A stretch of DNA of 64,000 nt. Origin: Oculina patagonica (lineage: Eukaryota). The stretch covers positions 10,354,001 to 10,418,000 of the forward strand of contig NC_135764.1 of assembly GCF_052425735.1 (NCBI RefSeq). The letters run 5' to 3'. A program made the position numbers and the translations under genes. The notes beneath the pieces are model-generated. The model made no database searches. It was not told the origin of the DNA and saw only the letters and a program-made list of their open reading frames with translations. This document shows, piece by piece, positions 2,526 to 17,812 of the stretch (the stretch's first letter is position 1; each line of letters begins with the position of its first letter).

Positions 2526-2597
2526 ACAGGTTTTTTAATAACAGGTTTTTTATGTTAAGGTACAAGACACTAAAAAACGGTAACAAGTGGTCCTAAA

Positions 2598-2669: not shown

Positions 2670-3270
2670 ATTTTTTTTTCCTTGTGTCAATGTTCCCTAA
2701 GCCCTAGTGGCCGCGCACCCTGGGAATGAACGTGTACAAAGTTAGCAAGACCACCATCCTATAGATATGGTTCACAAAGTGCCATACTGTCCTTGTGGTA
2801 TCTGGAACTCAATACTTTGCACTAAACGCATGCGCAGATGAGTCTACGCGATACACTCACGATTGATAATTAGTTACCTCTCTTGTGAAGACCACAAAGG
2901 TTGTCTCAGAAAGCGCCATGCCTTCCTTATGGTATGGTTCTTCCTGGCACTAAACGCATGCGCAGATGAGTCTACATTGCTTCGGCGATTCTGAAAAAAC
3001 GCACGCTTGTGAAGTATTAAAAAAAACACGTCAGAGAGGGGGGATGAGGGGGTATCCCCCTTTCTCGGGTGTACTGGGAACGAGTACGAATCGAGCGGTG
3101 AGAGTGTTTATATCTCAAAAGATGTCGACAAGTAAGTTATTAAATATTCAGTTATGGAGAACGATCAACGTGGGTACGATTGAAACTATATCAACGTGTT
3201 GCGGTAGGTTTCCCATCTGGGGCATGCTGTTGGACACAACAGCATGCCCCATACGAGCTAGTGGGTAGAA

Positions 3271-6200
3271 CTAGGCGTTAAAGTAACCATAGGGGTATGA
3301 CATAAAGGTGTTGGCATCTACCACTCTCTTGTCGAAAACCACTTGATAGCGCTTGATCTCCGTCACAGTGTTCAGGGTTTTGGTCGTTTTGTCTCGGGTG
3401 ATCTTGTGAGGGTTGAACACGGCAATGCTCCTCGTTTCGGCCAAGGGTTCTTTCACTTCGGATTTGACGTTGTCTTTCAATGTCTCAAAGTTGAGATGGG
3501 CGGATCCTCTCACGTTCAAGGAAAAACCCCTTACTTTACAACAGGTTTTTCCCAGTTTCGTCTTGTAGGCATAGTTTTTAGGTCCGGCGGCGGCAAATTC
3601 CACAATGAAGTCATCATCGTCTAGTTCGTTGGTAAAGTCTCCCAGGTAATCACCCAGCGGTAAGGAGGGCTGACCTTCTCGATGTTTGTAGATGAGGGAA
3701 TCTGTGTCAAAATACAAGATCTGTTCGGGTTGCAGGATGGAAAGACCTTCTTGGTACAGCTTCAAACGGGCCCAGGTGGTCGTAAAGCAGGCCACAAAGA
3801 TGTTGATGTCTGGTTGAACGTTGGCGCAGTCCTCCTTGCACTTATGGACCACCTCCAACATCTCTGGATTGACGACCCGAATGTCGTGGATGTCTCGGGT
3901 CTCGTCTCTTAACAAGTCGTGAAACTCAGCTGCAGAGGTGAAGGCTTCGACTTGGGTCTTGTTGCCTCTCTGACCATACTTGCCCCAAAAACTATTGAGC
4001 ATGATCTTGGCCAGAGATCTGCGTCCGGGATTCTTTTCAATCTTGTCCGGATCCAACTGGAGGCCTTCTTTGAGAAAGAACTGTCTCAAGTATTCCTGGC
4101 GTTTGTCTGGATCGTCGCCCACCCACGAGGGCCAACCGCTCGCTTCCTGCTTCATCTTCAGGAAGGTGTTGACATACTCTTTAAACATGGTGTTGGATTT
4201 GCGGTCAAAGTGCCACACCTCGTGAATGTGTTCCACCACGTACCCTTGCTTGACGGCCTCTTCCAACTCGGGCGTGCACCACGTTCCGGTCAGTTGGCGT
4301 TCTTGAGGGCTGTGAGCGCATTTGGAGGATCGTTGGGTCAACGGCTTGGGCTGCTCCACTTCCACGCAGGTACGGCAGAGGGGGAATGTCAGTTTACCCC
4401 CTTGGCGATAGGGCAACACGGGGCTGTACAACCCGTAAGGTGGCGTCACCGTACACTTTGCCAGACCGAAGAATTGTGAAATGTTCGTGTGTCCCGGTTC
4501 TAGGATCACTTCCGGATGCCCTTGAGGGTAGTCACAGTTTTTGTTGACCCAGGGGTACAACGAGGTAAAGTCCACGTACCGGATCTCCTCTTCAGGTTCG
4601 GCAAGGTCATAGAGGCGGACGGCATTGGTTCTACCGCCAAAGAACGCGTCTCGGGGCTCCAAGCGGGAGTTGATCGACAACGAGTCCACGAACGATTTCA
4701 CCTCGGGATCACTGTCCTTGAGCGCTTTCCACTGGCATTCCCACATTTCTACCACGCGGTACCCCGCATCTCGGATCCGCTGCGTCTTTTGTTGCGTTTC
4801 CGCGTACACGTCCCTCAGACTTCTGTCGCCCATCTTCCGGTGCTTCTGATCGCGATTGGGAAAACAGTCAGGACAGCCGTGAAAGTAGCAGCCGTGGAAC
4901 TCGTAAACCGTGCGATCCTCGTACCCGTCGACGTTCATCAGACGGTGTCCAATCCACAAGGCTCGTTCTCCACCGTTCCTAGCGTGACGGATGGTGCCCT
5001 GCGTCTGGCTGTCTTGATAGAGCAACCATTCCAGCGACACCAGGGAGTGAGGTTTGCCCTTGCCTTCCCAGCCTCGTACCGGTTCAGAAGCCAAGGTCTC
5101 TTCTTGCATGCACTTGGTGCGGTAGAAGCGATTACAGGCGGAGGCAATGGTGAGGCATTGCTCCATGGGATCGAAGCCGGCAATGGCTTGAAACTCTGCC
5201 CGGAAGACCTTGCAACCTTCGTGCAACAGTTCCACGTCTGAGCGACAGTAGTCGACAAGTTCGTTCCGAAAGTGGAACTCGTAATTCTCCGCCACGCGTT
5301 CCTCGTACCACTTGTCGAATTCGGCTTTCCTGGCAGTGGACATTCCCTCTGGATCGTAATAGTCTCTGGCAGGCATGCTGCCCACATAGTTTTGGTGTTC
5401 CTTCGTGTTGAAAAAGTGGGGGAAAAACCCCTTCTTTTGTTCGGTGAGGCCAAAGGCTTTGGGAAAGGTAGCAAGGCTCATCTGTAGAAAACACATGGAG
5501 TCCTTAAAGGTGATGCGGGGGATGGTCATGCTGATTATTTTGGCACCATTGACGACTTGTTCAGGGCAGATGGCTTGGTCGTACAACTCGTTTAGTATGA
5601 AATACGAGTCGTAGCCTTGGAAGTTATGAGCGACAGCTATGACGCGGTGTTGTTCGGCGATCTCCCTCAGCCAAGCGAGAAAGTCTTTCACGCAAGTCTC
5701 TCCCTCAAAGGTTCTCCTCTCGTCGGTGTCTCCTCTCAGGGCGCAAATCAAGTTGGCCACGTGCTCGCCTTCTTCCTGCCTGGCTTCGGCGTCCCAACTG
5801 ACGAACACGGGTGGTTGGTCTTCTTTGCGTTGACCGGCGCTGGTTCTCTTGCGGTTCTGTTTTTGTTCCACCTTGAGAGGATTTTGTATGTAGCACTGGT
5901 GGTAACGAAGATCTTGGTATTCCTTGCAGGACGGACAGGAAGCATGGCCGCACTTGTGACTGTTTCTCAGTTCATAGTCACCGTAGGTCTTGAAACACCC
6001 CGTACACCGTTTGTGCTTGTCACACACACTGTTCTTCTTGTCTGGGGTCATGTCTTTACCGGTGTCGGTGCGACTCTTGTGCAATTGAAGACAGCGGGTT
6101 CCAAAAAAGTCCCGTTGACAGTCTGTACAGTTCACCCTGGGTACAGCGTGGGCTCTCTTCCATTCGTGGCAATCGGTCTGATGGCAGGCGGCGCACCTGG

Positions 6201-7137
6201 CACCCGGGCAGCGGTGTTGCCTCCGGTCATTGTGGCTGAAGCCCTTTTCGCATTGGGTACAATAGTAACTCTTTCCAAAAAATCCCCCTAGGGTGGTACA
6301 GCCGTGGTAATGGTCATGGTGTTTGATCAAGATCAAACGTTTGTCGTCGGGGCGTTGTGCTCCTTTGAAGATGATCTGGTAACCATGTTGGACAGACACC
6401 ACCACAATCTGGTAAGCGTTCAAGTGGGCTTGAAATTTGGCCAATTCGTCCAAGCCGCAAGGACCTTCTGGCACGTCTGACAAACGGTGTAGTTCCTTGG
6501 CTGCCCTTTCTTGCACCGTATCATGCCTCCTTAAGTTTCCATAGTACCAATGGTCGGTCCCGAAATCGGCCCGGGCCTTCATCATCACCAAGGCACGGGC
6601 ACAGCATAACTGGTCGGTGTTTTTGATCTTGAAGACACACCGTTTTTTCTGCAGGATGTCCTCGATGGGGTCCAAACCGGGTTTGTATTTCTGGTTGTCT
6701 CCCCCTCGGCCTGGATCTTGCACGTGAGACACGTTTAGGTTGAACGTGTCGTCCACTTGAAAAGTCTGATTACTGTTCAGCATGTCACTGATTTGTTTTA
6801 ACAGCTGTTGGGCAGCGACGGTGTTTTCTCGCCACTCTCCCACTCTCAGACGTCTGGAATGAAAGGCATTTTGAATTCTGTTACTGTTGATGTTGATCAA
6901 CAAGTGGTCGTCATCTCCAACCGCTCCATCATCCAAGATATGGCGCTGTACGGCTCTCTGCAAGGCTCGGGCAATCTGTTGTGGGAGTACGGGACGCGGT
7001 CCTAGGGGTGCGGATTCTACTGCGGCACCACCACCTGTCTGTATTAGGCGTCCGGTAAAGTTTCTGATATGGAGGCCAAATCTGCGCACTCTGCGGTCCA
7101 CGTGACCTCTCAGTTCAAATTCAAAAGGAGCTTCCAT
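3271..7137 (-). CDS. polB: Protein-primed family B DNA polymerase: N-terminal terminal-protein/OTU-like and Cys-rich regions, exonuclease, inserted Vsr-like nuclease, polymerase
   Basis: Exonuclease motifs WDAE, AHNFQGYD, YCRSDV; polymerase motifs YVDFTSLYP, KIMLNSFWGKYGQ, YFDTDS, GPKNY; insert YEFHGCYFHGCPDC...GYRVVEMWECQW; OTU-like DQLCCARAL...HDHY. The first ATG is at 7137 (the ORF track starts at a TTG at 7182). Confidence 0.97.
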   Translation of the reverse strand: MEAPFEFELRGHVDRRVRRFGLHIRNFTGRLIQTGGGAAVESAPLGPRPVLPQQIARALQRAVQRHILDDGAVGDDDHLLININSNRIQNAFHSRRLRVGEWRENTVAAQQLLKQISDMLNSNQTFQVDDTFNLNVSHVQDPGRGGDNQKYKPGLDPIEDILQKKRCVFKIKNTDQLCCARALVMMKARADFGTDHWYYGNLRRHDTVQERAAKELHRLSDVPEGPCGLDELAKFQAHLNAYQIVVVSVQHGYQIIFKGAQRPDDKRLILIKHHDHYHGCTTLGGFFGKSYYCTQCEKGFSHNDRRQHRCPGARCAACHQTDCHEWKRAHAVPRVNCTDCQRDFFGTRCLQLHKSRTDTGKDMTPDKKNSVCDKHKRCTGCFKTYGDYELRNSHKCGHASCPSCKEYQDLRYHQCYIQNPLKVEQKQNRKRTSAGQRKEDQPPVFVSWDAEARQEEGEHVANLICALRGDTDERRTFEGETCVKDFLAWLREIAEQHRVIAVAHNFQGYDSYFILNELYDQAICPEQVVNGAKIISMTIPRITFKDSMCFLQMSLATFPKAFGLTEQKKGFFPHFFNTKEHQNYVGSMPARDYYDPEGMSTARKAEFDKWYEERVAENYEFHFRNELVDYCRSDVELLHEGCKVFRAEFQAIAGFDPMEQCLTIASACNRFYRTKCMQEETLASEPVRGWEGKGKPHSLVSLEWLLYQDSQTQGTIRHARNGGERALWIGHRLMNVDGYEDRTVYEFHGCYFHGCPDCFPNRDQKHRKMGDRSLRDVYAETQQKTQRIRDAGYRVVEMWECQWKALKDSDPEVKSFVDSLSINSRLEPRDAFFGGRTNAVRLYDLAEPEEEIRYVDFTSLYPWVNKNCDYPQGHPEVILEPGHTNISQFFGLAKCTVTPPYGLYSPVLPYRQGGKLTFPLCRTCVEVEQPKPLTQRSSKCAHSPQERQLTGTWCTPELEEAVKQGYVVEHIHEVWHFDRKSNTMFKEYVNTFLKMKQEASGWPSWVGDDPDKRQEYLRQFFLKEGLQLDPDKIEKNPGRRSLAKIMLNSFWGKYGQRGNKTQVEAFTSAAEFHDLLRDETRDIHDIRVVNPEMLEVVHKCKEDCANVQPDINIFVACFTTTWARLKLYQEGLSILQPEQILYFDTDSLIYKHREGQPSLPLGDYLGDFTNELDDDDFIVEFAAAGPKNYAYKTKLGKTCCKVRGFSLNVRGSAHLNFETLKDNVKSEVKEPLAETRSIAVFNPHKITRDKTTKTLNTVTEIKRYQVVFDKRVVDANTFMSYPYGYFNA

Positions 7138-7522
7138 CTTGAAACAAAGGAAATAAGGCAATGAATGGATGGAAAAAAACAAATGTACGTTTTTTTTTAT
7201 CTATATGACTGCCATGTTCGGAGTCATCAGCACTCTTCCAAAGTACAGGGGTCTCGAACAAATCTGCGTACTCTCCGGTCAACGTGGCCTCTCAATTGAA
7301 AGTCAAAGGCAATAAGGCAATGAATGTACGTTTTTTTATCTATATGATGGCAATGATCGGAGTCATCAGTACTCGTGGAAAGTACAGTGGCCTTTAAAGT
7401 GACTACAAGAACATTTGTCCGTAATTTTCTGTTTTCCTGTACAGCTCATTAGAATATTACACAGCATAAAAGCACATGAAAAACGGGTTACACAAATTCA
7501 CTCTACTCTAATAACTAGTTAC

Positions 7523-7761
7523 CTCTTCATTGGACTCTCCTTCACTTGTGCTTGCACTCGGTTCGCCACCACCACTTGTACTTGCACTCTACGATGAAAA
7601 GAACATCGTATAAATAAAAAACATTGGCGAATCAAATATAACCCAACGCATCTCATCAACGTACCTCTTCCAATCTAGCTCTCTCCGGGCTCTCAGCCTC
7701 TATATCTTCTCCCAGTAGTAGTCTCATCTCCAACCATAGTAGTCTCATCTTCTTCTTCCAT
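7523..7761 (-). other. Two small upstream exons of the leftward (PolB-side) transcription unit
   Basis: Exon 7748/7761-7665 ends GAG|GTACGT; a 76-nt intron ends TTCTTTTCATCGTAG; exon 7588-7523 (SASTSGGGEPSASTSEGESNEE) ends GAG|GTAACT. TATAAAA on the minus strand at 7823-7817. Confidence 0.55.
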
Positions 7762-7934
7762 TGTAGCGCTCAGACCAAACAAAGTTTGCGAGTGAATAAA
7801 TGAGCAAAGTAGCTCCTTTTATACAACTTTTCCATCCCAGAAGAACTGGGCTCTAGTATTCCCATTGGTCAATCGAGGTGACCTGATACAGAATGAACCA
7901 ATGAGATCTCATGATCAATGTCACCCAAGGTGAC

Positions 7935-8075
7935 GGGATTTTCCCCACAAGGGTAAAATCCCAAGCTGACGGGATTTTCCCCACAAGGGTAAAATCCCGG
8001 GATTTCCCCCCAAGGGAAAAATCCCGACGCACGCGCGTGGAGAATCTTTCTCGGAATTCTCGGAATTCTAGGAAC
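7935..8075. promoter_or_regulatory. Cluster of NF-kB/Rel-like sites upstream of the PolB promoter
   Basis: GGGATTTTCC at 7935 and 7971 and GGGATTTCCC at 7999 fit GGGRNWYYCC. Opposite-strand near-matches GGGTAAAATCCC (7951, 7987) and GGGAAAAATCCC (8014); then GGAATTCT twice. Confidence 0.55.
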
Positions 8076-8614
8076 CCGCGTGTGTTCATTCTCGGAAAAG
8101 TACAGTAAAACGGACAAAGTTTTCTTGTCGGATTACAGCTCTTTTCAAGAAGGATATAAGCTTTAAGGTGAGCTAATGTCTCCATACTCTACTGTACAAG
8201 ACGAAGAGCGTTTGATAAATTGTATTTACTGCGAAAAATAAATTTGGTTACGTTGTAAATTTTGACGAGTGGTTTGTTTTTGTTCGTGCGGCCATCATGA
8301 ACCGTGCATAGTAAAGAAGAAGAAGGTTTTAGACCCGTTCATTTCGTTCAAGGTTTTTTGGTCTAGTTGTGTTTATGGTCAAAAAAAGAAGAAACCGAAC
8401 TTTACGAATAAACAAGTCGTTTTTGGTGGACTGAATTATTCTTTTAAGCGAAATTGCTCGCGCAGTTGTCGTTTTCTTTCGTAAACAACAACAACTTCAA
8501 ACGCCTTCATCTTTTTCTTTTCGCAGTCTTAAAAATATCGAGGGAACATCCCACTATGATTCAGAAAAAAAATAAAACCTAGCCACCTAGAAGTGAAGCT
8601 TAAACGTTGTAAAT

Positions 8615-9325
8615 CCTAAACAAGTGTGTCAACGACTTTGTTGTGATTTTTCACCGGTCGCGAAAAAATATAATTGTAGCGTGCAGTTCATTTGGCCGTT
8701 GTTCAAATGCATTTTTCTCGAAGAAAAATTTTTTTTGGCGGCCCTTATATCAAAGGGACGTCTAACCATGAATGATATTATTTCGATGAATGTAAGTGAG
8801 CAAAAAATTTCATATTTTTGGACTCTAAGCATAAGTGTCATCGACTTTGTTGTGATTTTCACCGTTCGCGAAAAAATATAATTTAGCGTACGGTATTTGT
8901 TGTTGTTTAAATGCGTTTGTTTGTTTGTTTTTGCGGCCCTGAAATGAAAGGGACGTCCAACCATGAATGATATTATTTTAGTAAATCTCAAAGCAAGTCA
9001 TTGAGCCGGATCTTCACATTTTTACACCCTAAACAAGTGTGTCAACGAGTTTGTTGTGATTTTTCACCGGCCGCTAAAAATATAATTGTTGTAGGTGGTT
9101 CATTCGGCCGTGTTCAAATGTTTTTTCTCGAAGAAAAATTATTTTTTTCGGCCCTTAAATCAAAAAGGACGTCCAACCATAAAAGATATTATTTCGATGA
9201 ATGTTATTGAGCCGAAAATTTCATATTTTTGGACTCTAAGCACAAGTGTCATCGACTTTGTTGTGATTTTCACCGTTCGCGAAAAAATATAATTTAGCGT
9301 GCGGTATTTGTTGTTGTTGTTGTTT
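8615..9325. repeat. AT-rich internal tandem array, ~205-210-bp monomers in a ~413-bp dimer
   Basis: CCTAAACAAGTGTGTCAACGA at 8615 and 9028; TTTGTTGTGATTTT(T)CACCG...AAAAATATAAT occurs four times. Confidence 0.85.
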
Positions 9326-9382
9326 AAGCGATTGAATCCCATACTCTCGTAATTCAGTTTCGGCATGGAGCAATTTGTAAAT

Positions 9383-9904
9383 TTATTTAACAACAAAAGT
9401 CTGGTACCATAACCAGAAAGCATGACATTCGGTCATTGGACAATGTCCTTCGTATAGATGAAAACCGCAACTAGGTAAAGGTTCTACAATTGTCTCTTTC
9501 AACACGTCGTATTTCGGACATCCGTACAGTTCTAAATTCACGCTAGGAATGTTCAGTTTGTTCAACAAGTCTCTTTCGACGTGTCCTCCCTTGTAAGCCA
9601 CCACGGTTCTCTCGGGGGTTTTGGTCTCCTCGTACAAATCCCACATCACCTCCTCCACCCTGTCATACTCGTAGGCCTTTTCTTCCTTTCTGGGTTGATA
9701 CGTCAGTCCGTGCACGTTGTATTTGACGTAAGACACGGTTTTTCTGTCTCTGGAAGATAAGTTGCACCACGACATTCTCATGTAGAAAGCATGGCGTCCG
9801 AACTTTTCTTGCCAAGTGTAATAACCCAACTCGCGTACTCGAAACGTCTTCTCCACAAAGTAACCTTCCAAGTCCAAGATCATGCACACGTTTTCCGGAG
9901 TCAT
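9383..9904 (-). CDS. DEDDh-fold 3'-5' exonuclease with ECHC-type Zn site (arenavirus NP exonuclease / Maelstrom-like)
   Basis: ILDLEG...VRELG, KYNVHGL, VAYKGGHVERDLL, SCGFH...GHCPMTEC; AATAAA overlaps the stop codon. Confidence 0.7.
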   Translation of the reverse strand: MTPENVCMILDLEGYFVEKTFRVRELGYYTWQEKFGRHAFYMRMSWCNLSSRDRKTVSYVKYNVHGLTYQPRKEEKAYEYDRVEEVMWDLYEETKTPERTVVAYKGGHVERDLLNKLNIPSVNLELYGCPKYDVLKETIVEPLPSCGFHLYEGHCPMTECHAFWLWYQTFVVK

Positions 9905-9969
9905 GCCAGAGCTAACTGCACTCTGATGCTTGACGTAGAAAATATATGAAAATGTTTAAACTGTAAATC

Positions 9970-10878
9970 TCAATGATCCAAATTAGGATATTGTTTCTGG
10001 GAAATGCATCTCAGATACAGTTGATTTCTCAGCATTTTCTCTTCATCCGAGTCGTACTTCACGCCAGCCAATTCCGGGGGAAGAATAATTTTCCCTTCTC
10101 CATCCACCCAAAACTTTTGCTCTTGACACTGTTTGACCAATGACTCGTCCAAGGGAAGATCACCAATCCAATCCTTGACCGGGGGTGGGTAGTGTTGTAC
10201 TTTGAAGGCGGGTCTCCCATCCAGAATTCGTTGCGGTCTATCCACCACGTCTTGTCCTCTTCTGGGGTATCCAAATTCGTCCCTAGAGTCCAGTCCAGAC
10301 CTTCTCGAGTAGAGGGGATCCTCGTTTCCCACATATTCCTTTCCTTCCAGCCAGGCTTTGATCTTGCCAAACGGAACACTGTCGGCCCATTGGAAGAACC
10401 GGCATTTCCCTTTTCTGCACTTCAAATAGATCCTGTTCGGGTTGCTCTCTGATTTCGACATGCTCAGAATGAGACTCTCGTTGCAGTAACATTTCATCTT
10501 ATCCATGTTCCAATAATAGTAAGCCGGTAATTGTTGATTGACCGCCACCACGTACTGGTCAATGTGGGCGCTACCGGTGCAAATGAAACAGATGGTGCCT
10601 TCGCTCGTGTGGGGGCAAAAGTAGAACTCCCATCCCCCGTCCGTCATTCTCTTGGTCAGCGGTTCTTTGTGGACGGGGCAAACCGGGTCGCGCTCCGTGT
10701 CGTCAAAGGTCTGTTGTAGGAACTGGTCGGGGTCGAAAATTTCACCCTCCTCCAACACTTCCTCTTTCAACTCCATCTTCTTCTTTGTAGGATGTCTCTT
10801 TTTACGGGGGACTTTGGGTTTCTTGGGGTTTCCAGTCCCTCTCCTCTGTCGCTTTTTTTGGGGTTCTGCTACGTCCAT
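9970..10878 (-). CDS. Nuclear zinc-finger protein: basic NLS, EEGEI motif, Cys/His finger and GRF-type zinc finger
   Basis: KKRQRR...PRKKRHPTKKK; LEEGEIFD; CPVH...FYFCP...CFIC; CYC-x13-NPNRIYLKC-x4-CRFFQWAD-type zf-GRF pattern. Confidence 0.75.
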   Translation of the reverse strand: MDVAEPQKKRQRRGTGNPKKPKVPRKKRHPTKKKMELKEEVLEEGEIFDPDQFLQQTFDDTERDPVCPVHKEPLTKRMTDGGWEFYFCPHTSEGTICFICTGSAHIDQYVVAVNQQLPAYYYWNMDKMKCYCNESLILSMSKSESNPNRIYLKCRKGKCRFFQWADSVPFGKIKAWLEGKEYVGNEDPLYSRRSGLDSRDEFGYPRRGQDVVDRPQRILDGRPAFKVQHYPPPVKDWIGDLPLDESLVKQCQEQKFWVDGEGKIILPPELAGVKYDSDEEKMLRNQLYLRCISQKQYPNLDH

Positions 10879-10926
10879 GGTGCTCTCGATGCTCCAACTG
10901 AGGACTAACAGGAGACAACACGGTGC

Positions 10927-11040
10927 TTTTATACTTTACTCTCGGATGACGTCAATACGCACGAACCAACCAGAGAGGTAACACGTGACCTCTTCCGACC
11001 AACCGGCAATGACCCAGGTGACGTCATCCAACGTATAAAA
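10927..11040. promoter_or_regulatory. Compact bidirectional promoter between the leftward and rightward gene blocks
   Basis: TATAAAA on - (10933-10927) and on + (11034-11040), enclosing TGACGTCA (10947, 11019) and CACGTG (10982). Divergent ATGs at 10878 and 11077. Confidence 0.7.
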
Positions 11041-11076
11041 AGAGCTGCGCGTCCATTTGTCGACTCAGTTGTAGCG

Positions 11077-11352
11077 ATGGAAAGCACAGACAGCGATTCC
11101 AGCCAAACTCAAACTCAAACCCCACAAGTCAACGGTGTCTTTGTACAAGGAGATCCCAAGGACTGGGAACCATTGCCTTACTATAGGGATCTAAAAAGGG
11201 GCGATTATCAATCGGACGAAGATTACCTATTGGAGCGCGCGAAACGTGGCATGGAAGCAGGCTACACGTTTATGCAGTGTCAAGAACATTGGATGTGCGA
11301 TCTGGAGAGTGCATTATACAAAGGTTCGGCCGAAGCAAGCCAAGAGCAGTGA
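11077..11352 (+). CDS. Hypothetical acidic protein (91 aa)
   Basis: First ATG after the TATA box, good initiation context (GCGATGG), tightly packed against the next ORF. Confidence 0.65.
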   Translation: MESTDSDSSQTQTQTPQVNGVFVQGDPKDWEPLPYYRDLKRGDYQSDEDYLLERAKRGMEAGYTFMQCQEHWMCDLESALYKGSAEASQEQ

Positions 11353-11353
11353 C

Positions 11354-12124
11354 ATGGGTACGAGAGAAAACTGGCTGGACCTGGAACAACGACTCTTCTA
11401 CACCAATTGTACAAAGCTAGAAAAAAAGATCCAGACCGACACGGGAATCACTGTGTTGTCGTTAGACTATCCCACCACCATACCCGAAAACATTCCAAGG
11501 AGAGTCTATGTCTTCGAGGACATGGTGAAAGAGCGCGGGTGTGCCAAGAACCGCGTCACCGAAAGTGAATGGCTCAAAGAGAACCCTCACTGGAAGGGAG
11601 CCGTGATGGCGACCATCAAAGACATTGGGCACGGTTATCTCTGGGATAGACATTGGAATGAATTTGTCTACGTGCCATTGCAGCGAGCCTTTTTCTTCGT
11701 GACGTCTCGCAAACCGCCGCCCATTGGCATCGGCGTCTCGTTCTGGTTGAACGCGAACGTCTGCGACTTTGACGACCGGAGTGGTTTAGAAGATCTCATC
11801 GCACCGTTGAGAGCGAGTGTAGCCCTAGGCCAGACATTGTCTGCCTACTTGAAACAACCTATCACGGTCGACGCAAACACGTACGAAGAACTGTGCAACC
11901 AACTGGCAACTCAAGTAAAATTGCAACGCCTAGAAAGCAATCGCTGGCAAGAAATAGCGGATAGATTGTTAGACAGAGATCTCTGCAACCGTTGCGCCAT
12001 GGATAAAGATGAAGCTTACCTGGGCGACGACTACCAAAAAGCCAAACTGTGGAGACCTAGAAGTTGCGAAACTTGTACAAAATCTTTTGATAACATATTT
12101 ATTGATGCAGGCTATTTAAATTGA
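11354..12124 (+). CDS. Hypothetical protein (~256 aa) with a C-terminal CxxC...CxxC motif
   Basis: ATG 1 nt after the upstream stop; CNRC...CETC; AATAAA at ~12134. Confidence 0.7.
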   Translation: MGTRENWLDLEQRLFYTNCTKLEKKIQTDTGITVLSLDYPTTIPENIPRRVYVFEDMVKERGCAKNRVTESEWLKENPHWKGAVMATIKDIGHGYLWDRHWNEFVYVPLQRAFFFVTSRKPPPIGIGVSFWLNANVCDFDDRSGLEDLIAPLRASVALGQTLSAYLKQPITVDANTYEELCNQLATQVKLQRLESNRWQEIADRLLDRDLCNRCAMDKDEAYLGDDYQKAKLWRPRSCETCTKSFDNIFIDAGYLN

Positions 12125-12151
12125 CGTTGTATAAATAAAAGTTCATTTGTC

Positions 12152-12463
12152 ATGGATCTGTATGGAAAGTGGGAGTGGTTGAAAAGATTGTGCGAGAAAG
12201 CGTATGCTGAATTTGGGAGGGGTATAGATATACCGGAAGATACGAGTGACTCCCCCTTGAGAGTGTTCGAAGCCACCCACATAGAACAAAACTATTTCAG
12301 ATTGATACCGTTTATATTATGGTTGAGACATTTCAAGGATCCAGCCGAGCTGTTTGCTTCTATTTACAAACTTCATCCGACCACGATCGAAGAGGCAGCT
12401 CATAAATTACACGTCACTTATATGAGGGTGGTCAGAGCGTCGTCGACATGCCAAAGAAGCTGA
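12152..12463 (+). CDS. Hypothetical protein (103 aa)
   Basis: ATG-initiated ORF filling the gap before the integrase and overlapping its start. Confidence 0.55.
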   Translation: MDLYGKWEWLKRLCEKAYAEFGRGIDIPEDTSDSPLRVFEATHIEQNYFRLIPFILWLRHFKDPAELFASIYKLHPTTIEEAAHKLHVTYMRVVRASSTCQRS

Positions 12464-13527
12464 AAAAGGATGAGAAGATACTTTTGGACTACCACGATCC
12501 CAGTCAACCGGGTAGCTTGGGCGGGATAACAAGATTCGCCAAAACGCACAAGATATCTGTCGACACAGCCAAAAAAGTATTGGAGCGCGATTTGGGTTAT
12601 ACCCTTCACAAACCGCGCAGACGTCGTTTCGCCACGTTACCGGTCCTGGTGTTTAATGTCGACCAACAGTGGGTAGCAGATTTAGTGGAAACGCAACCGT
12701 TGTCCAAATACAACAAGGGTCACAGATATCTACTCAACGTGATCGACGTCTTGTCTAAATATGCCTGGGTGGAACCCCTAAAAGACAAGACGGGAAAAAC
12801 GGTGTCGGACGCCTTTGCCAAGATTTTGAAACGAGCCGATGGACGCAAACCTCAGAACCTACAGACCGACGACGGGAAAGAATTTTACAACAAGACGTTT
12901 GCCGCGTTGATGAAACGGGAAGGCATCCACCACTTTTCCACGGCCGGAGATACCAAAGCCAGCATCGTGGAACGCTTCAACCGCACTCTCAAGGAACGCA
13001 TGTACCGATACTTTACCGCCAAGAACACGCTCAGTTACCTACCTGTACTCCAGGCCTTGGTGAGAGGGTACAACGGATCCCACCATCGTAGCATCGGCAC
13101 CAGCCCCGAGAAAGTGAATGCGAGCAACGAAGGAAAAGTGTGGGAACGTCTGTACGCGAAGAGGTTGTCGTCGCGTAAAAGAGAACGAAAAACCCCGCTA
13201 AAAGTAGGAGAACGCGTGAGATTGAACAAGAAATTTCGCACGTTCGAGAAAGGGTATTTACCCGGCTGGACCGAAGAAGTGTTTGTGATACGAGAGGTGC
13301 TTCGGGGACCACCCGTCACGACTTACAAGATCCAAGAGTTGGACGACACCCCCCTTCGCGGTACGTTTTACAAGGAAGATCTACAAAAAGTCGCAGTGTC
13401 CGACGACGATGTCTTCAGGGTGGACAAGATCGTCAAACGAAAAGGAAATAAAGTCTTGGTGCACTGGAAAGGCTGGCCAGACAAGTACGACAGCTGGATC
13501 GAGAAGACGGCTCTAAAAAAATCATGA
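12448..13527 (+). CDS. int: Retroviral-like (rve) integrase with a C-terminal chromodomain
   Basis: QWVADL, VIDVLSKYAW, LQTDDGKEF, VERFNRTLK (DDE); chromodomain FRVDKIV...VHWKGWPDKYDSWI. Confidence 0.96.
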   Translation: MPKKLKKDEKILLDYHDPSQPGSLGGITRFAKTHKISVDTAKKVLERDLGYTLHKPRRRRFATLPVLVFNVDQQWVADLVETQPLSKYNKGHRYLLNVIDVLSKYAWVEPLKDKTGKTVSDAFAKILKRADGRKPQNLQTDDGKEFYNKTFAALMKREGIHHFSTAGDTKASIVERFNRTLKERMYRYFTAKNTLSYLPVLQALVRGYNGSHHRSIGTSPEKVNASNEGKVWERLYAKRLSSRKRERKTPLKVGERVRLNKKFRTFEKGYLPGWTEEVFVIREVLRGPPVTTYKIQELDDTPLRGTFYKEDLQKVAVSDDDVFRVDKIVKRKGNKVLVHWKGWPDKYDSWIEKTALKKS

Positions 13528-14555
13528 GCCACGAGGAAGGATTTTACGTCACGTTACCCAGTCACAGCAGCGGAACCGAGTTTCCAGAGAATAGAGCAAA
13601 CTCTTTCAAGGTGCGATTACCTCACCCGCTACGATTGGAAGGAACCGGTTGGAAAGTGGGATTGAGTAGCATTTCCGTGCCAGATGCCAGCATCGACTTA
13701 ACTCGCTTTAAGTCGTTCAAGTTTCCTCTCTTGAGTGCTCAGTGGATGCTCAAGCGCAAAGACAACGAGGGTCGCGTGCAAAGCAAGTCGGTGACCACCG
13801 ATCTGACGTTCCAGGACATTCTATATGACGACAACATCGTGGATGGCCTCAGTTTCATGAAAGCCCTGGTCTTCAAGTTCGATCAAGTCAAAGAATACAA
13901 GCGTATCGTGGGAGACTTGACCAAGTCGCCCGATAATGGAAAGCAGTGGGAATATACGTTCAAGTGGGAAGGTGAAGAACTAGTCCTCGACAACTCGAAC
14001 TTGGACGTCTCGGAAGTGAAAACTGAAGGCGTCCCATATTACATGTCTTTCAACGAGGATTTGGCCTTTGACATGGGATGGGTAAAAAAGGACGAGAAAG
14101 AAAACGTGTTTCTCGGGCCGAACCTGAAGCCGGAATGCCACCACGCTACGATACCCGATCCCATAGACGTGGATGATTTTGGAGAGGGCAAGAAAAATTT
14201 CTGGGTTGTTGAGAATGGACAGCTTTTCTTGAGTTGCTATTGTAACTGGCGCTTTGTGAAACTCAACAGAGCCTTCCAAAAAGTGATTGGAGATGCATCG
14301 CGTACGCTTTTCGTTTACTCAGATGTGGGTGGTAGTTCCGTTGTGGGAAATCAAGTCACGGATCTGTTGCGGGAAATTCACTTTCAACGTGAAGGAAAAG
14401 GTATCAAGTACTTTGAACCTCTCCACATACAATATATTCCACTCCGCAACCAGATCGTGGACATTATTGAAACGCAAGTGAGCGAGACTACAGGTAAACT
14501 GGTGGATTTTGGCGAAGGCAACACGATCGTGACCTTACATATCAAGCGAACATGA
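13524..14555 (+). CDS. Minor capsid protein (penton; Polinton PX-like)
   Basis: N-terminus FYVTLPS...FPEN...FKVRLP...WKVGLSSI and C-terminus LFVYSD...VGNQVTDLLR...YIPL...VTLH, typical of Maverick pentons. Confidence 0.85.
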   Translation: MSHEEGFYVTLPSHSSGTEFPENRANSFKVRLPHPLRLEGTGWKVGLSSISVPDASIDLTRFKSFKFPLLSAQWMLKRKDNEGRVQSKSVTTDLTFQDILYDDNIVDGLSFMKALVFKFDQVKEYKRIVGDLTKSPDNGKQWEYTFKWEGEELVLDNSNLDVSEVKTEGVPYYMSFNEDLAFDMGWVKKDEKENVFLGPNLKPECHHATIPDPIDVDDFGEGKKNFWVVENGQLFLSCYCNWRFVKLNRAFQKVIGDASRTLFVYSDVGGSSVVGNQVTDLLREIHFQREGKGIKYFEPLHIQYIPLRNQIVDIIETQVSETTGKLVDFGEGNTIVTLHIKRT

Positions 14556-14809
14556 GAGGCGGTGCCCTGACGCGTTTCACACCGGATCCTCCACCTCAAG
14601 AGGGGAACGGATTTTTGGCCGACATCGTGAGAGAGTCTCTCGGTGGAGCCGTGAGAGGATTTAAGAGTGGGCGCGGCGTCGCGGACCGCATTCGTAAAGC
14701 GGGTCAAGGAGCCAAGAGTGGTCCTAAACGAGTCGTGAAACGCAAACTGAAAAACGTCATAGAACGAAACGTCAAGAGAAAACTGAACGACATCTTTGGC
14801 GAAAAATGA
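14552..14809 (+). CDS. Small basic virion-type protein with QEGNG motif and amphipathic helix
   Basis: QEGNG-FLADIVRESLGGAVRGFK; ATGA overlaps at both ends. Confidence 0.7.
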   Translation: MRGGALTRFTPDPPPQEGNGFLADIVRESLGGAVRGFKSGRGVADRIRKAGQGAKSGPKRVVKRKLKNVIERNVKRKLNDIFGEK

Positions 14810-15042
14810 ATCCCGTTTACTCGCGATCGTCCAGACTGGTCCGATCCAAACGCGCCCCCGTCAGACAGCGGGGAGAAGGATTCTCACTGGCACTTTTGAA
14901 CCAGGCCTTGTTGGGACAAAAGAGGCGACGACGAAAAGTACAAAAGGGCGGGTGGATAGGTCCCGAGGTCAGAAAGCCTCCTGGCTACGACTGGATACAG
15001 ACCTTACGGAAGCGCAGTGGAAGAAGGAAGAGAAGACGATGA
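14806..15042 (+). CDS. Small Arg-rich core-type protein with QRGEG and QKGG motifs
   Basis: RQRGEG-FSLALL and VQKGG-WIG; ATGA overlaps at both ends. Confidence 0.65.
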   Translation: MNPVYSRSSRLVRSKRAPVRQRGEGFSLALLNQALLGQKRRRRKVQKGGWIGPEVRKPPGYDWIQTLRKRSGRRKRRR

Positions 15043-16442
15043 CCGAAACCATCTCGAGCGCCTACCCGCAGTCGAGACGCGAGGCCAATCCTCGATTGGA
15101 TCTATTCGCCGTACCACCGACAGACGTCAGCGTCTCGTCGTATCGGATGGTCCCCGTTCAGACCTACACCACAGGCATCAATCCGGTGGAGTTTCAGATC
15201 GACCCCCAAGAAGATTACATCGATCTCAGCCGTAGCTTTTTCGAGGTAGAATTGCAACTGAAGAAAGACAACGATGAGAACGTGGCAGCTGCCGACAAGC
15301 TGTGGCCCGTCAACAATCTAGCCCATTCTCTGTTCAAGCAAATCAGCGTGCGTCTCAACGGTACTCTCATCAGTCCCCAGACGGACACGTACCATTACAG
15401 AGCCTTCTTGGAAACGTTGCTGAATTACGACAGGCGTGATGGAGAAACCATCTTGAAACCTCAAGGATGGTACAATCATATCGATTTCCCAGCCACGTGG
15501 ACGGACAATAACACGAACACTGCAGCCAACGCTGGAGCTGGACACGCAGACTATGTAGCCCTGACCACCAATCACAAGGAGGCTCTCAAGAACTCTAAAG
15601 CAGAACAAGCCAATTACACGGAAGGCAAGCGACACGTGTTGCGTTTCAAACCCCTCATCGAAGTGTTTCATCTGAGCAAGTTGTTGGTACCCAGAGTGCA
15701 GATAGGAATACAGATGTACTTCAATTCTCCCGACGTGTTCTTGAACGGAGTGGGTCTGGCAGGAAAGTTGACGGCCGAGGAAGTCAAAGTTCGAATGTAC
15801 CTGTGTCAAGTGCGTCTCAATCCCACGACGTACAGGAGACTGATGGATGAGATGACCACCAAGAGTCAAGTGGTGAGTTACCCGACCGTGAGAAGCGAGA
15901 TTCGGACCTTCAACATGCAGGGAGATCAACGACGGTACGAATGCACCAACTTGTTCCAAGGAAGAATTCCCAACCGCGTGATCGTGGGTATGGTACTGTC
16001 CACAGCCTTCACCGGGAACGTGGTCAACGATCCCTTCTGTTTTCAGAAGTTTGGAATGAGCAGCATAAAACAACTCGTGGGAGGAGAAGAGTATCCTTAC
16101 GAGACGCTAGAACTGGTTCACAACGATGCCACCAAAGATCTCAGAGGGTACCACCGTTTCTTGCAAGCCACCGGATGTCTGTGCAAGCAGCAAGGAAACA
16201 TGGTGAGAGGTGACGATTGGGGACAAGGAAAGAATTGCACGTTGTTCGTGTTCGACAACGTGGCCAATGGATGCGTGGACAGTTACAGGATGAACCCCAA
16301 GCAAGCCGGAAATCTACTAATAGAGCTGAACTTTGGAGCCAACCCAGCTGTGAACTTGACCATCATCGTGTACGGAGAGTTTGAGAATCTCTTGGAGATA
16401 GACAAGAACAAAGCCGTGTTGTACGACGTGTACCAGCGTTAG
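15039..16442 (+). CDS. Major capsid protein (double jelly-roll; Polinton PY-like), 467 aa
   Basis: LDLFAVPPT, YIDLSRS, NNLAHSLFKQISVRLNG, YRAFLETLL, IPNRVIVGMV...AFTG...DPFCF. The ATG at 15039 overlaps the upstream TGA. Confidence 0.92.
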   Translation: MTETISSAYPQSRREANPRLDLFAVPPTDVSVSSYRMVPVQTYTTGINPVEFQIDPQEDYIDLSRSFFEVELQLKKDNDENVAAADKLWPVNNLAHSLFKQISVRLNGTLISPQTDTYHYRAFLETLLNYDRRDGETILKPQGWYNHIDFPATWTDNNTNTAANAGAGHADYVALTTNHKEALKNSKAEQANYTEGKRHVLRFKPLIEVFHLSKLLVPRVQIGIQMYFNSPDVFLNGVGLAGKLTAEEVKVRMYLCQVRLNPTTYRRLMDEMTTKSQVVSYPTVRSEIRTFNMQGDQRRYECTNLFQGRIPNRVIVGMVLSTAFTGNVVNDPFCFQKFGMSSIKQLVGGEEYPYETLELVHNDATKDLRGYHRFLQATGCLCKQQGNMVRGDDWGQGKNCTLFVFDNVANGCVDSYRMNPKQAGNLLIELNFGANPAVNLTIIVYGEFENLLEIDKNKAVLYDVYQR

Positions 16443-16444
16443 TG

Positions 16445-17014
16445 ATGGAGAAAGTGACTTTGAATAACGTGCAATTGGATCAGTTGGCCAGACATCACCC
16501 GTCGTTGAAGCCTTACTTTTACGGGACGGTGGCCTGCGATCGATTACCTCGCAAACCACTCAAGACGGAAGCCCGCGGGTACATCGTCAACACCGATCCT
16601 CACTACATGCGCGGTCGGCATTGGATCGCGCTGTGGACGAATGGAAACGTGTGCGAAGTATTGGACAGTTACGCCTTACCCCTAGAAGTGTACCAGACGG
16701 CGCAACCGTTGCAAGATTGGTTGGACGATCATTGGAAGTACGTGGAGCGCAACGGACAGAGTCTACAATCGTTGTACAGTCAGAGCTGCGGCGATTACGC
16801 GTTGATGTATCTCATCGATAGGGCCGAAAGACGTAGCATGAGTCAATTCGAAGCGAGATTCAAGAAACACGATTACGTGTACAATGATCATAAAGTTGGG
16901 CAAATGTTGAAGCAATTGATCTCGAAGGAAAGGTCGTGGCACAAAATTTGTAAGATGGAATACCATCAGGATTGTGAACCGTCTCTCTGCGGTGTAAGAC
17001 ACTTGTTGTTGTGA
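16445..17014 (+). CDS. Adenain-like cysteine maturation protease
   Basis: YIVNTD...GRHWIAL (His), LDSY (Asp), LQSLYSQSCGDY (Gln/Cys); AATAAA signals at 17022-17045. Confidence 0.92.
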   Translation: MEKVTLNNVQLDQLARHHPSLKPYFYGTVACDRLPRKPLKTEARGYIVNTDPHYMRGRHWIALWTNGNVCEVLDSYALPLEVYQTAQPLQDWLDDHWKYVERNGQSLQSLYSQSCGDYALMYLIDRAERRSMSQFEARFKKHDYVYNDHKVGQMLKQLISKERSWHKICKMEYHQDCEPSLCGVRHLLL

Positions 17015-17146
17015 GATGACAAATAAAAACGTTGAAATAAATAAGGTGTGTGTCGTCTGTCGCTCGGGAGATCGGGATTCGTTGCAGACTTTTTTTCTGC
17101 AACATGCTTATATCATTGCTCGTTTTTTGACGAATGTCATTTCGCC

Positions 17147-17812
17147 ATGGAGCGCGGTGAAGCCTTTAGCTTTCGGATGCCCTCTAGCATTTTGATCGTG
17201 GGCCCCTCTAGCTGCGGAAAGACTTGTTTTACCGAGTCGGTACTTTTGAATCACTCAAAAGAGTTGTTTAGTACACCCCCTGAGACCATTCATTACTGTT
17301 TTGGGGCTTGGCAAGACGGTTTCGCGAACATGAAAAAGCGAGGCGTGAAATTTCACGAAGGGATTCCCGAAGAAGTAGATTTGACCAAATGGTTTCCCCG
17401 TGGAGGGGTGATGGTATTGGACGATCTGATGGAAGAAGGAGGAAACGACAAGAGAGTATTGGATCTGTTCACCAAACTTTCCCACCACAGGAACATCACC
17501 GTCCTGTACTTGTGTCAAGACATGTTTCCGCCGGGAAAATACGCCAAGAGCATTTCTCGAAATGCGCATTACATCGTGGCTTTCAAGAACCCTCGCGATC
17601 AATTGGGCATGAGGAATTTACTGTTACAAGCGTTTCCCTCCCGATGGCAAGATGTGATGGACGTCTACACCAAGACGACGGAAAGACCCTTTGGTTACAT
17701 GGTATTGGATCTACACCCTGCCAGTGGCGACGACAGACGGATTTTTAGCCACCTCTTAAAAGGCGAGGGATGCATGAGATGTTACAGATTCGTTCGAGAT
17801 GTTCGTACGTAA
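17147..17812 (+). CDS. FtsK/A32-like genome packaging ATPase
   Basis: Walker A GPSSCGKT, Walker B MVLDD, SHHRNITVLYLCQ, SRNAHYIVAFKNPRD. Confidence 0.93.
   Translation: MERGEAFSFRMPSSILIVGPSSCGKTCFTESVLLNHSKELFSTPPETIHYCFGAWQDGFANMKKRGVKFHEGIPEEVDLTKWFPRGGVMVLDDLMEEGGNDKRVLDLFTKLSHHRNITVLYLCQDMFPPGKYAKSISRNAHYIVAFKNPRDQLGMRNLLLQAFPSRWQDVMDVYTKTTERPFGYMVLDLHPASGDDRRIFSHLLKGEGCMRCYRFVRDVRT

Follow-up and report, generated by a model that had tools for sequence, protein, structure and literature searches.

Most non-structural genes of Mavericks/Polintons, a widespread type of virus-like element, are unassigned. Protein-primed replicons are served by single-stranded DNA-binding proteins such as phage phi29 p5 and adenovirus DBP, the latter of which has a zinc-dependent fold and a nuclear-targeting N-terminal region. 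Single-stranded DNA (ssDNA) is also bound by GRF zinc fingers, and the tandem GRF fingers of NEIL3 prefer forks (PMC9561275). A further point of comparison is provided by the adintovirus 'Oncoid' accessory proteins, which are encoded upstream of the polymerase gene (PolB) and carry short linear motifs in addition to zinc-binding residues (Starrett et al. 2021, PMC8502044).

The host protein ARS2 recruits its effectors through the consensus (E/D)(D/E)G(E)(L/I/V), of which EEGEI is the variant present in FLASH (PMC9402713; bioRxiv 10.1101/2023.07.25.550453). In the crystal structure of Red1 with Ars2, only 5-6 motif residues are ordered, and the four residues that were mutated (all but the Gly) are each needed for binding. 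Host motifs bind with Kd values of about 0.5-5 uM to a docking patch that has been described as conserved across species (PMC9402713), and interactions of this kind are known in plants and flies too. The effectors compete for one ARS2 site and the motif is common to productive factors, one of which, PHAX, carries Q at motif position 4 as a functional host variant (bioRxiv 10.1101/2023.07.25.550453). So far, the CBC-ARS2 sorting hub is known to be read through this motif by host effectors only. Nuclear DNA viruses face ARS2-dependent RNA decay, which ORF57 of the nuclear DNA virus KSHV counters by blocking MTR4 recruitment, partly via ALYREF, rather than via an ARS2 motif (PMC6398867).

Here we describe a coral gene in which a pair of zinc ribbons is preceded by an ARS2-type motif. 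Our preferred reading, to which we assign a probability of roughly 0.4, is that its product is a nuclear DNA-binding replication or early protein of a Maverick and carries an ARS2-docking peptide. The literature searched contains no report of an ARS2-recruitment motif in a viral protein, and nowhere mentions GRF zinc fingers alongside Polintons, Mavericks or adintoviruses.

A complete Maverick/Polinton element in a coral genome

The window, by which we mean the entire 64,000-nucleotide stretch of Oculina patagonica DNA that was analysed, contains a complete, adintovirus-like Maverick/Polinton element of 19.9 kb (positions 2159..22105), which is bounded by a 6-bp target-site duplication, CGCGAC, at 2153-2158 and 22106-22111. 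Its terminal inverted repeats (TIRs) of ~690 bp (left, 2159..2847; right, 21416..22105) pair in two perfect blocks of 188 and 510 nt. A protein-primed family B polymerase (pPolB) is encoded on the minus strand at 3271..7182 (PF03175, E 6.3e-48), and aligns in a single piece with the polymerase of the related locus L001 at 65% identity over 1295 aa. The plus strand carries an rve integrase with a C-terminal chromodomain at 12448..13527 (PF00665, E 4e-13; PF00385, E 1.8e-5), which is the first gene of the morphogenesis block and is oriented opposite to the polymerase side of the element.

The remainder of this block (13524..17812, plus strand) consists of ORFs of 343, 548, 190 and 254 aa. The 343-aa and 548-aa ORFs are capsid candidates solely on the basis of their position, size and conservation, whereas the other two gave weak matches below the respective cut-offs, the 190-aa ORF to adenain-like proteases (Peptidase_C5, E 0.0078) and the 254-aa ORF to Pox_A32/AAA_16 (E 0.04-0.07). 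A phospholipase A2-like ORF on the same strand (20836..21201; PF08398, E 5.2e-12) is an accessory gene of the type found in adintovirus genomes. No ORF had a match in PHROGs. Given the TIRs, the target-site duplication, the pPolB, integrase and phospholipase A2-like genes and the synteny with related elements, this is a virus-like Maverick/Polinton residing in a stony-coral genome.

The GRF gene, its neighbours and its relatives

A 302-aa tandem zinc-ribbon (GRF-type) protein is encoded at 9970..10878 on the minus strand by an intact ATG-to-stop ORF with 0 stops and 0 frameshifts. Its ATG lies in the context CACCATGG, and a TATAAAA sequence, read directly from the DNA, is located ~50 nt 5' of this codon (10927..10933, minus strand). 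Two copies of the palindrome TGACGTCA (10947-10954 and 11019-11026) fall inside a 198-bp divergent promoter region. The order along one strand is GRF gene, 173-aa ORF, repeats and PolB, and this series diverges from the integrase/capsid block.

The 173-aa ORF (9383..9904, minus strand) is directly downstream of the GRF gene. An AATAAA at 9382-9387 overlaps its stop codon, and none is present from the GRF stop to the ATG of the 173-aa ORF. This ORF has a counterpart in the same position in L006 (38% identity) and none that we found in L001, is without a match in Pfam, PHROGs or the PDB, and gave a single-sequence AF2 model that is useless (mean pLDDT 31.8). For a Stylophora polinton, a separate terminal protein has been reported (PMC11161782). 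Between this ORF and PolB are four copies of a ~205-bp repeat (8607..9318), which the Oculina copy of the element has as well.

The closest relatives are found in Oculina patagonica and in other scleractinian corals. The GRF family comprises 286 matches at E<=1e-3 and 98 at E<=1e-10, with coverage mostly of residues ~60-180. An Oculina patagonica homologue is positioned between integrase and PolB, this neighbourhood recurs in L005, L006, L007, L008 and L009, and a family member adjoins a Maverick integrase or PolB in every related locus with enough flank. No relative was found among the IMG/VR viral contigs scanned. Identities for the GRF gene are 30-39%, compared with 55-72% for the integrase, capsid-block and ATPase genes of the same elements. 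Two near-identical copies, L002 and L003, differ from the GRF ORF at 5 and 4 nucleotides, all synonymous (5/5 and 4/4), which indicates purifying selection. It is nearly certain that the ORF belongs, as a conserved gene maintained by selection, to an adintovirus-like Maverick lineage in scleractinian corals, and that it has the architecture described here.

Tandem zinc ribbons of the encoded protein

The second of the two ribbons (residues 130-167; 10378..10491, minus strand) matches the Pfam family Zn_ribbon_GRF (PF06839) with E 3.9e-7 and 30.5 bits, above the gathering score of 25.9 bits. Residues C130, C132, C154, C159, R149, F162 and W164 are each kept in at least 90% of 90 relatives. At the G-R-x-F signature, the sequence reads N-R-I-Y, such that the Gly and Phe are replaced, and R149 and N146 are kept in at least 90% of relatives. 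The GRF segment of the protein has a net charge of +5, and the strands at residues 135-140, 150-154 and 162-164 of the AF2 model form a three-stranded zinc ribbon.

Ribbon 1 (residues 67-100; 10579..10680, minus strand) is likewise three-stranded. Its likeness to GRF is confined to the fold: it has no Pfam match and yields no BLASTP alignment with ribbon 2. None of its candidate ligands, C67, H70, C88 and C97, varies among the four closest homologues. The AF2 model comprises two three-stranded zinc ribbons and a tethered C-terminal alpha/beta domain, with pLDDT >90 for residues 61-180 and >95 for residues 241-296. The latter domain (9991..10158, minus strand) has no named relative, and is preceded by a low-confidence linker (residues 185-240; 10159..10326, minus strand) whose length varies among relatives.

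When this model was compared with the PDB by Foldseek, the best matches were the tandem GRF fingers of NEIL3 (7omk and 7jl5; probability 0.98, ~110 columns, both fingers), and the APE2 GRF (5u6z) was found with probability 0.90. NEIL3 was also matched by the family profile (E 9.6e-5), and the NEIL3 and APE2 GRF domains are the sole sequence or profile matches in the PDB. The likeness extends to the helical segment that joins the two ribbons, to the GRF arginine (R149) and to the Trp of the C-terminal F-F-x-W element (equivalent to W164). However, the coral protein stands alone, without a glycosylase or nuclease domain, and is encoded by a virus-like element; its ribbon 1 uses Cys-His-Cys-Cys and lacks detectable similarity to ribbon 2; and the β1 arginines that NEIL3 uses to contact DNA are not kept, the retained positions being R149 and W164 only. 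By analogy with these fingers, DNA binding by the GRF protein is likely.

A search of BFVD gave no significant viral relative by fold, and neither adenovirus DBP nor any viral ssDNA-binding protein (SSB) was matched by sequence or fold in the PDB or BFVD. Any resemblance to DBP or phi29 p5 is one of functional analogy only: the GRF gene is located within the polymerase block of a linear dsDNA element with protein-primed replication, its product combines, like DBP, zinc-dependent folds with a putative nuclear-targeting N-terminal region, and no SSB is otherwise assigned in that element.

A first-pass annotation, which was made from the letters of the sequence alone, had described the product as a GRF protein with a basic N-terminus and an additional Cys/His finger. 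These features are borne out by the Pfam score, by the 15 K/R among residues 1-36, and by the invariant ligands and GRF-like fold of ribbon 1. It had also taken the gene to be viral, which holds in that the gene belongs to a virus-like Maverick, but it had not recognised that the gene is part of a Maverick/Polinton in a coral genome.

An ARS2-type motif in the N-terminal region

Residues 1-36 of the protein have a net charge of +12, and include a basic tract with three K/R runs (residues 8-35; 10774..10857, minus strand) that we infer to be a nuclear localization signal or a nucleic-acid-binding tail. The N-terminal tails of relatives are also basic, without being alignable to this tract. EEGEI, an exact match to the ARS2-recruitment consensus, occupies residues 43-47 (10738..10752, minus strand). 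It is followed immediately by a predicted short helix (residues 48-58; 10705..10737, minus strand) that starts with FDPDQFL and is modelled by AF2 at residues 50-58. Residues 1-49 are without predicted secondary structure and have pLDDT values of 51-79. With values of 70-79 around residues 31-60, the motif peptide may be packed against the protein's own body.

The relaxed motif [ED][ED]GE[ILV] arises in 0.5% of shuffles of the GRF protein (probability 0.005), and across the window's open frames of 100 aa or more, 13,690 residues in all, EEGEI is its only match. Within the family, the motif is present in 11 of 68 members when 0.155 are expected, the maximum in 2000 shuffles being 3. The four closest homologues (39-60% identical) share no invariant run longer than V41-P50. 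In every related locus with the motif, it is restricted to the GRF gene. To judge from these sequence comparisons, the ARS2-type motif is not a chance occurrence. The first-pass annotation had assigned EEGEI to a 12-residue stretch at 10733-10768, which is correct to within one base, and had cautioned that such a short motif could arise by chance, a concern that the shuffles and the homologues rule against. The conservation that it proposed to look for is present in the closest homologues, though not family-wide.

A word-indexed search with the N-terminal 45 residues returned the query alone, and is uninformative, with 4 candidates indexed. The motif is absent from a duplicated subfamily of ~415 aa, whose motif-free members make up most of the 58 among 66 proteins that are without it, and it occurs in none of the ORFs of at least 80 aa of L005, L008 and L009. 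It is thus not essential to the family. Some relatives have variants outside the strict consensus, or have lost G-E-I while keeping V-L-E-E and the helix. Of the two N-terminal elements, the helix is conserved more widely in the family: its pattern is found in 48 relatives, of which 25 have the 5-mer no more than 12 residues upstream (24 of these at 0-1 residue) and 23 are without it. Conversely, the 5-mer is found without an adjacent helix and with varied flanks in six relatives (P0024, P0028, P0116, P0131, P0138 and P0231). The right-hand flanks differ among the relatives that carry the motif, and P0028 has a tandem duplicate, an arrangement that recalls the tandem copies in ZC3H18 and ZFC3H1.

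The same acidic 5-residue motif is shared with FLASH, ZFC3H1/Red1, ZC3H18, ZC3H4, NCBP3 and PHAX (ELM LIG_ARS2_EDGEI_1), and, as in these host effectors, it appears to reside in an acidic disordered N-terminal region of an (inferred) nuclear zinc-finger protein. The coral motif differs in that it is putative, is encoded by a Maverick, is fused to zinc fingers of DNA type rather than RNA type, and has no homology to the host proteins beyond the motif itself. We consider docking of the EEGEI peptide on ARS2 to be plausible. Given that the ARS2-type peptide is strongly conserved, the protein is a credible putative case of a virus-like element tapping a host RNA-sorting hub.

Possible functions of the GRF protein

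In the mechanism that we propose, the basic tail would permit nuclear entry of the GRF protein, and the tandem ribbons would hold ssDNA or fork DNA in the manner of NEIL3's tandem GRF fingers. Such DNA is abundant during strand-displacement replication by a protein-primed polymerase, and thus the protein may serve as a DNA-side accessory in replication or early expression. The exposed EEGEI would bind host ARS2 at its basic effector domain (C-terminal leg). Docking could occupy the site that is contested by decay adaptors (ZFC3H1, ZC3H18 and ZC3H4) and by productive factors (PHAX, NCBP3 and FLASH), or could bring CBC-ARS2 to the templates of the element, and either option would bias what becomes of the element's capped transcripts. 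This downstream effect on RNA fate is speculative. The complete scheme, wherein a DNA-bound tandem-GRF protein docks CBC-ARS2 via EEGEI and so controls the nuclear fate of element transcripts, must be viewed as rather unlikely in its entirety.

The conserved N-terminal block might be read in another way. Because the adjacent helix is more widespread than the 5-mer, the block is longer than the motif and another partner is possible: the acidic stretch, EEGEI and the helix may together form a longer docking or activation element for a protein other than ARS2, with the consensus match being a by-product of composition. Such a partner could be the polymerase or terminal protein of the element, the C-terminal domain of the GRF protein itself, or a replication or transcription factor of the host that recognizes acidic-hydrophobic helices. 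The 23 helix-pattern relatives without the 5-mer favour this interpretation, as do those that keep V-L-E-E and the helix without G-E-I. The block spans ~10-17 residues, and its ten consecutive invariant columns exceed the 5-6 residues contacted by ARS2; the pLDDT of 70-79 is also rather high for a free linear motif. Yet the 5-mer survives independently of the helix in the six relatives named above and was duplicated as a unit in P0028, near-variants with Q at position 4 resemble the functional PHAX form, and no other partner for the 5-mer emerged from the literature searched. We give this interpretation a real but minority chance of being correct; it would leave unaltered the assignment of the product as a nuclear DNA-binding replication or early protein.

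In its pure form, the proposal of the first-pass annotation is that the protein is mainly a decoy, which would mimic the ARS2-binding factors of the host, titrate ARS2 from NEXT/PAXT/ZC3H4 and so shield element transcripts from the nuclear exosome, with fingers that bind RNA or are secondary. The exact consensus match and its conservation suit this idea, as do the competition of effectors for one ARS2 site and the faster evolution of the gene relative to its neighbours, which is frequent in host-interaction genes. There is also precedent in the requirement of a nuclear herpesvirus for a protein against ARS2-dependent decay (PMC6398867), although ORF57 is an analogue in function only, with neither sequence nor fold relation to the GRF protein. 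A single motif peptide of micromolar affinity, however, would be a weak competitor unless locally concentrated, blockage of the site would also impair the functions of PHAX, NCBP3 and FLASH, and many family members are without the motif. Moreover, conservation resides mostly in the zinc-ribbon core, relatives of which bind ssDNA, and the tandem ribbons together with the gene's location next to PolB point towards a DNA-side function, in replication or fork binding, rather than to an RNA-decay decoy only. We judge a pure decoy to be improbable. Far less probable still is an early protein of 'Oncoid' type with a role in the Rb/cell-cycle axis. In its position upstream of PolB and its pairing of zinc sites with linear motifs, the coral protein does recall these proteins (PMC8502044), but its zinc sites are GRF ribbons and not paired CxxC, and its linear motif is of the ARS2 type instead of LxCxE or CR1. 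Among 262 family sequences, 25 contain LxCxE, close to a rough, uncomputed chance estimate for Cys-rich proteins. As it lacks the LxCxE and CR1 motifs that define the 'Oncoid' group, the protein was not assigned to it. Finally, the notion of a chance ORF or a decaying remnant without function, for which one can invoke the generic caveat that 5-residue motifs arise by chance, has a negligible likelihood and is refuted by conservation: hundreds of family members occupy a syntenic position, near-identical copies differ synonymously only, AF2 predicts the fold with high confidence, the gene has a TATA box and a start codon in good context, and the element has perfect TIRs and a target-site duplication.

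Concluding remarks

With the preferred reading of a DNA-binding replication or early protein in mind, the GRF gene becomes a candidate for the ssDNA- or fork-binding protein of Maverick protein-primed replication. The ARS2-type peptide, as predicted from sequence, would tie a DNA virus-like element to the CBC-ARS2 sorting hub in a concrete, testable manner. If this link is true, a virus-like element would for the first time have yielded an ARS2-motif mimic, and ARS2-centred nuclear RNA surveillance would already have hindered DNA viruses and transposons in cnidarians. Short-motif mimicry would then extend to nuclear RNA surveillance, and the conflict would date to early animals.

A conserved gene of a Maverick/Polinton element

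The GRF gene is an uninterrupted ORF on the minus strand (9970..10878; 302 aa from ATG to stop, with 0 stops and 0 frameshifts), and it is not a free-standing host gene, being located inside a 19,947-bp Maverick/Polinton element (2159..22105) recognized from its terminal inverted repeats (TIRs), target duplication and gene content. The inverted repeats that bound the element extend over ~690 bp and consist of a perfect 188-nt block and a perfect 510-nt block, and the 6-bp direct duplication CGCGAC is present on both sides. Among its genes are a protein-primed family B polymerase (PolB; PF03175, E 6.3e-48), an rve integrase with a chromodomain, and weak adenain-like and A32-like ORFs. A PLA2-like ORF near the right end (20836-21201, plus strand; PF08398, E 5.2e-12) resembles adintovirus virion-accessory genes. 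The element belongs with the adintovirus-type Mavericks/Polintons of Starrett et al. (PMC8502044). PLA2-like homologues are also on record in the related loci L005 and L008.

The GRF gene is followed on one strand by a 173-aa ORF, four ~205-bp repeats and PolB; TATAAAA is situated ~50 nt ahead of its ATG, which has a CACCATGG context. The 173-aa ORF (9383-9904, minus strand) lies directly after the GRF gene, and its stop codon is overlapped by the sole AATAAA that follows the latter. This ORF has no match in Pfam, PHROG or PDB; it is identical in the near-identical copies L002 and L003, while locus L006 has a counterpart with 38% identity and the Oculina patagonica copy L001 has none. A possible identity for it is the separate terminal protein that has been reported for a Stylophora polinton. 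The repeats (8607-9318), in which two variants alternate, occupy a stretch of low GC that separates the 173-aa ORF from PolB, and L001 has similar repeats at the same place (~11500-11820).

The other ORFs that were compared each align in one piece to their relatives, with no breaks seen. One ORF of 164 aa (18415-18909, plus strand) matches SLATT_1 below threshold (E 3e-4), and a homologue at 19089-19619 of L008 is recorded under that Pfam family as well. SLATT_1, an effector domain with two transmembrane segments that is familiar from bacterial defence systems, is unexpected in a Maverick. A run of N occupies 38008-38168 of the window (assembly gap or masked).

Family distribution and mosaic structure

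When 1.8 billion representatives were searched in full with phmmer, the GRF protein had 286 matches at E<=1e-3, of which 98 reached E<=1e-10; the majority span residues ~60-180, which include both zinc sites. The closest full-length homologue is an Oculina patagonica protein with 60% identity; a partial protein from the same species is 94-96% identical, and further members occur in Desmophyllum pertusum and Stylophora pistillata. By these relatives and the near-identity to L001 given below, the element's host is a stony coral, most likely O. patagonica or a species close to it. In all related loci with enough flank (L001, L005, L006, L007 and L008/L009), the gene adjoins the integrase/morphogenesis block or the PolB of a Maverick. 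It diverges faster than its neighbours, with 30-39% identity between elements, whereas the integrase, a 548-aa capsid-block ORF and the ATPase of the same elements are 55-72% identical. In L008 and L009, a protein-kinase gene (8231-8926; PF00069) is located just upstream of a GRF gene whose ~420-aa product is without the motif described below. Compared with the near-identical copies L002 and L003, which come from public read assemblies, the GRF ORF shows 5 and 4 nucleotide differences, all of them synonymous; this is in line with purifying selection, if only modest evidence of it. The GRF gene, on the element's polymerase side, is an intact and conserved Maverick gene.

Similarity to L001 is unevenly distributed. 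Over 8.9 kb of the integrase/morphogenesis block (window 12128-21032, L001 1-8924), nucleotide identity is 97.8% and protein identity 92-100%, whereas the 292-aa ORF, the GRF gene and the PolB side (window 3317-10779, L001 10140-18000) reach only 44-65% protein identity. The element is in this respect a mosaic, and the disparity implies that Maverick lineages have recombined recently, the junction being a short way upstream of the integrase gene.

Against an expectation of 1.2, the window contains 11 copies of the palindrome TGACGTCA. Six copies fall within the element (8-mer starts at 2253, 2402, 10947, 11019, 21854 and 22004): each TIR holds two, and the other two lie in the divergent promoter that separates the GRF gene from a 91-aa ORF. 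As TGACGTCA is the CRE/ATF-type site, it may be a shared promoter element.

Architecture of the GRF protein

From N- to C-terminus, the protein consists of a basic tail, the acidic ARS2-type peptide and the helix next to it, a pair of GRF-type ribbons, a linker and lastly a C-terminal domain. Residues 1-36 contain 15 Lys/Arg (net +12). The acidic segment that follows (residues 37-66; net -9) includes EEGEI (residues 43-47; 10738..10752, minus strand). C-terminal to this segment is a Cys/His cluster (C67, H70, C88 and C97), and Pfam Zn_ribbon_GRF matches residues 130-167 (E 3.9e-7; 30.5 bits against a gathering score of 25.9). These features bear out the first-pass annotation's description of the ORF as a protein with a basic tail, EEGEI, a Cys/His finger and a GRF finger, and we assign a probability of about 0.9 to this gene identity and architecture.

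With 90 relatives as input, AF2 gave a model of mean pLDDT 79.6 that is most confident for residues 61-180 (>90) and 241-296 (>95). Residues 1-49 are without secondary structure, residues 50-58 form a helix within the segment that starts FDPDQFL directly after EEGEI, and residues ~185-240 are a low-confidence linker. Both zinc sites are modelled as three-stranded ribbons, which in fold best resemble NEIL3's tandem GRF fingers (PDB 7omk and 7jl5; probability 0.98, ~110 columns), with the APE2 GRF finger also among the best matches; a PDB sequence search with the family profile found NEIL3 only (E 9.6e-5). Ribbon 1 appears GRF-like by predicted fold only, having no Pfam match and no similarity to ribbon 2 by BLASTP. 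The GRF signature reads N-R-I-Y rather than the family's G-R-x-F, R149 and W164 are kept in at least 90% of relatives, and the β1 arginines through which NEIL3 contacts DNA are not conserved. A BFVD fold search gave no significant viral relative and no adenovirus-DBP-like match. An 'Oncoid' reading was rejected, as its defining motifs are missing in the GRF protein.

Conservation and possible partners of the EEGEI motif

The ARS2-recruitment motif (EDGEI/EEGEI), with the consensus (E/D)(D/E)G(E)(L/I/V), binds the basic zinc-finger leg of ARS2 (PMC9402713; bioRxiv 10.1101/2023.07.25.550453; ELM LIG_ARS2_EDGEI_1, PMC10767929), and FLASH carries it as EEGEI (bioRxiv 10.1101/2023.07.25.550453). 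In the Red1-Ars2 crystal, six peptide residues only are ordered; mutation of E32, D33, E35 or I36 of the motif each abolishes binding, Gly not being among the residues mutated, 12 residues are enough for binding, and host motif affinities are 0.5-5 uM (PMC9402713).

Chance origin of the motif is ruled out by its conservation. The relaxed form [ED][ED]GE[ILV] arises in 0.5% of shuffles of the GRF protein and has no second occurrence among the 13,690 residues of window open frames of at least 100 aa. In the four closest homologues (39-60% identical), which have unalignable basic tails, every one of the ten columns from V41 to P50 is invariant; this is the longest such run in the protein and exceeds any in the zinc sites. 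The motif is present in 11 of the 68 family members with enough N-terminal sequence, against 0.155 expected by shuffling N-terminal parts (maximum 3 in 2000 shuffles), a figure that, for related sequences, is an enrichment and not a probability. The conservation in homologues that had been proposed as a check is evident within one subfamily, but the ~415-aa subfamily, which has a duplicated finger unit, is without the motif, and so is every ORF of at least 80 aa in the L005, L008 and L009 elements. In one family set it occurs in 8 of 66 proteins, where P0231 (412 aa) is the sole one of the ~415-aa class and the other seven have 157-282 aa. Related loci that have the 5-mer have it in the GRF gene only.

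As the main rival to ARS2 docking, the whole 10-17-residue block might serve to dock a different partner, with an incidental match to the ARS2 motif; we hold this rival to be less likely than not. The adjacent helix is more widespread than the 5-mer: 48 proteins match its pattern, 25 of them with the 5-mer at most 12 residues upstream (0-1 residue in 24). Several relatives carry near-variants, or keep V-L-E-E before and the helix after while G-E-I is lost. On the other side, several relatives keep the 5-mer with differing right-hand neighbours, and P0028, the relative encoded in L006, has two tandem EEGEI (10172-10230) with different flanks and a Gln run before each, and is without an adjacent FDPD-type helix. 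Tandem copies likewise occur in the host effectors ZC3H18 and ZFC3H1 (PMC9402713). We regard ARS2 docking through EEGEI as a tentative proposal, somewhat short of even odds.

Proposed role

The basic tail would direct nuclear import, and the ribbons may place the GRF protein on the single-stranded or fork DNA that arises when a protein-primed element replicates by strand displacement. GRF fingers bind single strands, and the tandem NEIL3 pair favours forks (PMC9561275); we judge DNA binding moderately probable. In this the GRF protein would play a part like that of the SSB or DBP in other protein-primed replicons, although it falls outside those families. EEGEI, in turn, might dock host ARS2 and thereby skew what becomes of the element's capped transcripts. 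ARS2 has one such site, which is contested by decay adaptors and productive factors (bioRxiv 10.1101/2023.07.25.550453), and a nuclear herpesvirus requires protection against ARS2-dependent decay (PMC6398867). Protection of the element's transcripts from the exosome is improbable in our estimation, and the earlier functional proposal, viral mimicry that competes for ARS2, is only partly supported.

Literature searches returned no report of an ARS2-recruitment motif in a viral protein, no link of GRF fingers to Polintons, Mavericks or adintoviruses, and no description of the two together. The GRF domain and the ARS2-type motif are each of an already known kind; what is new to that literature is their combination in a conserved gene of the virus-like element of an early-branching animal.
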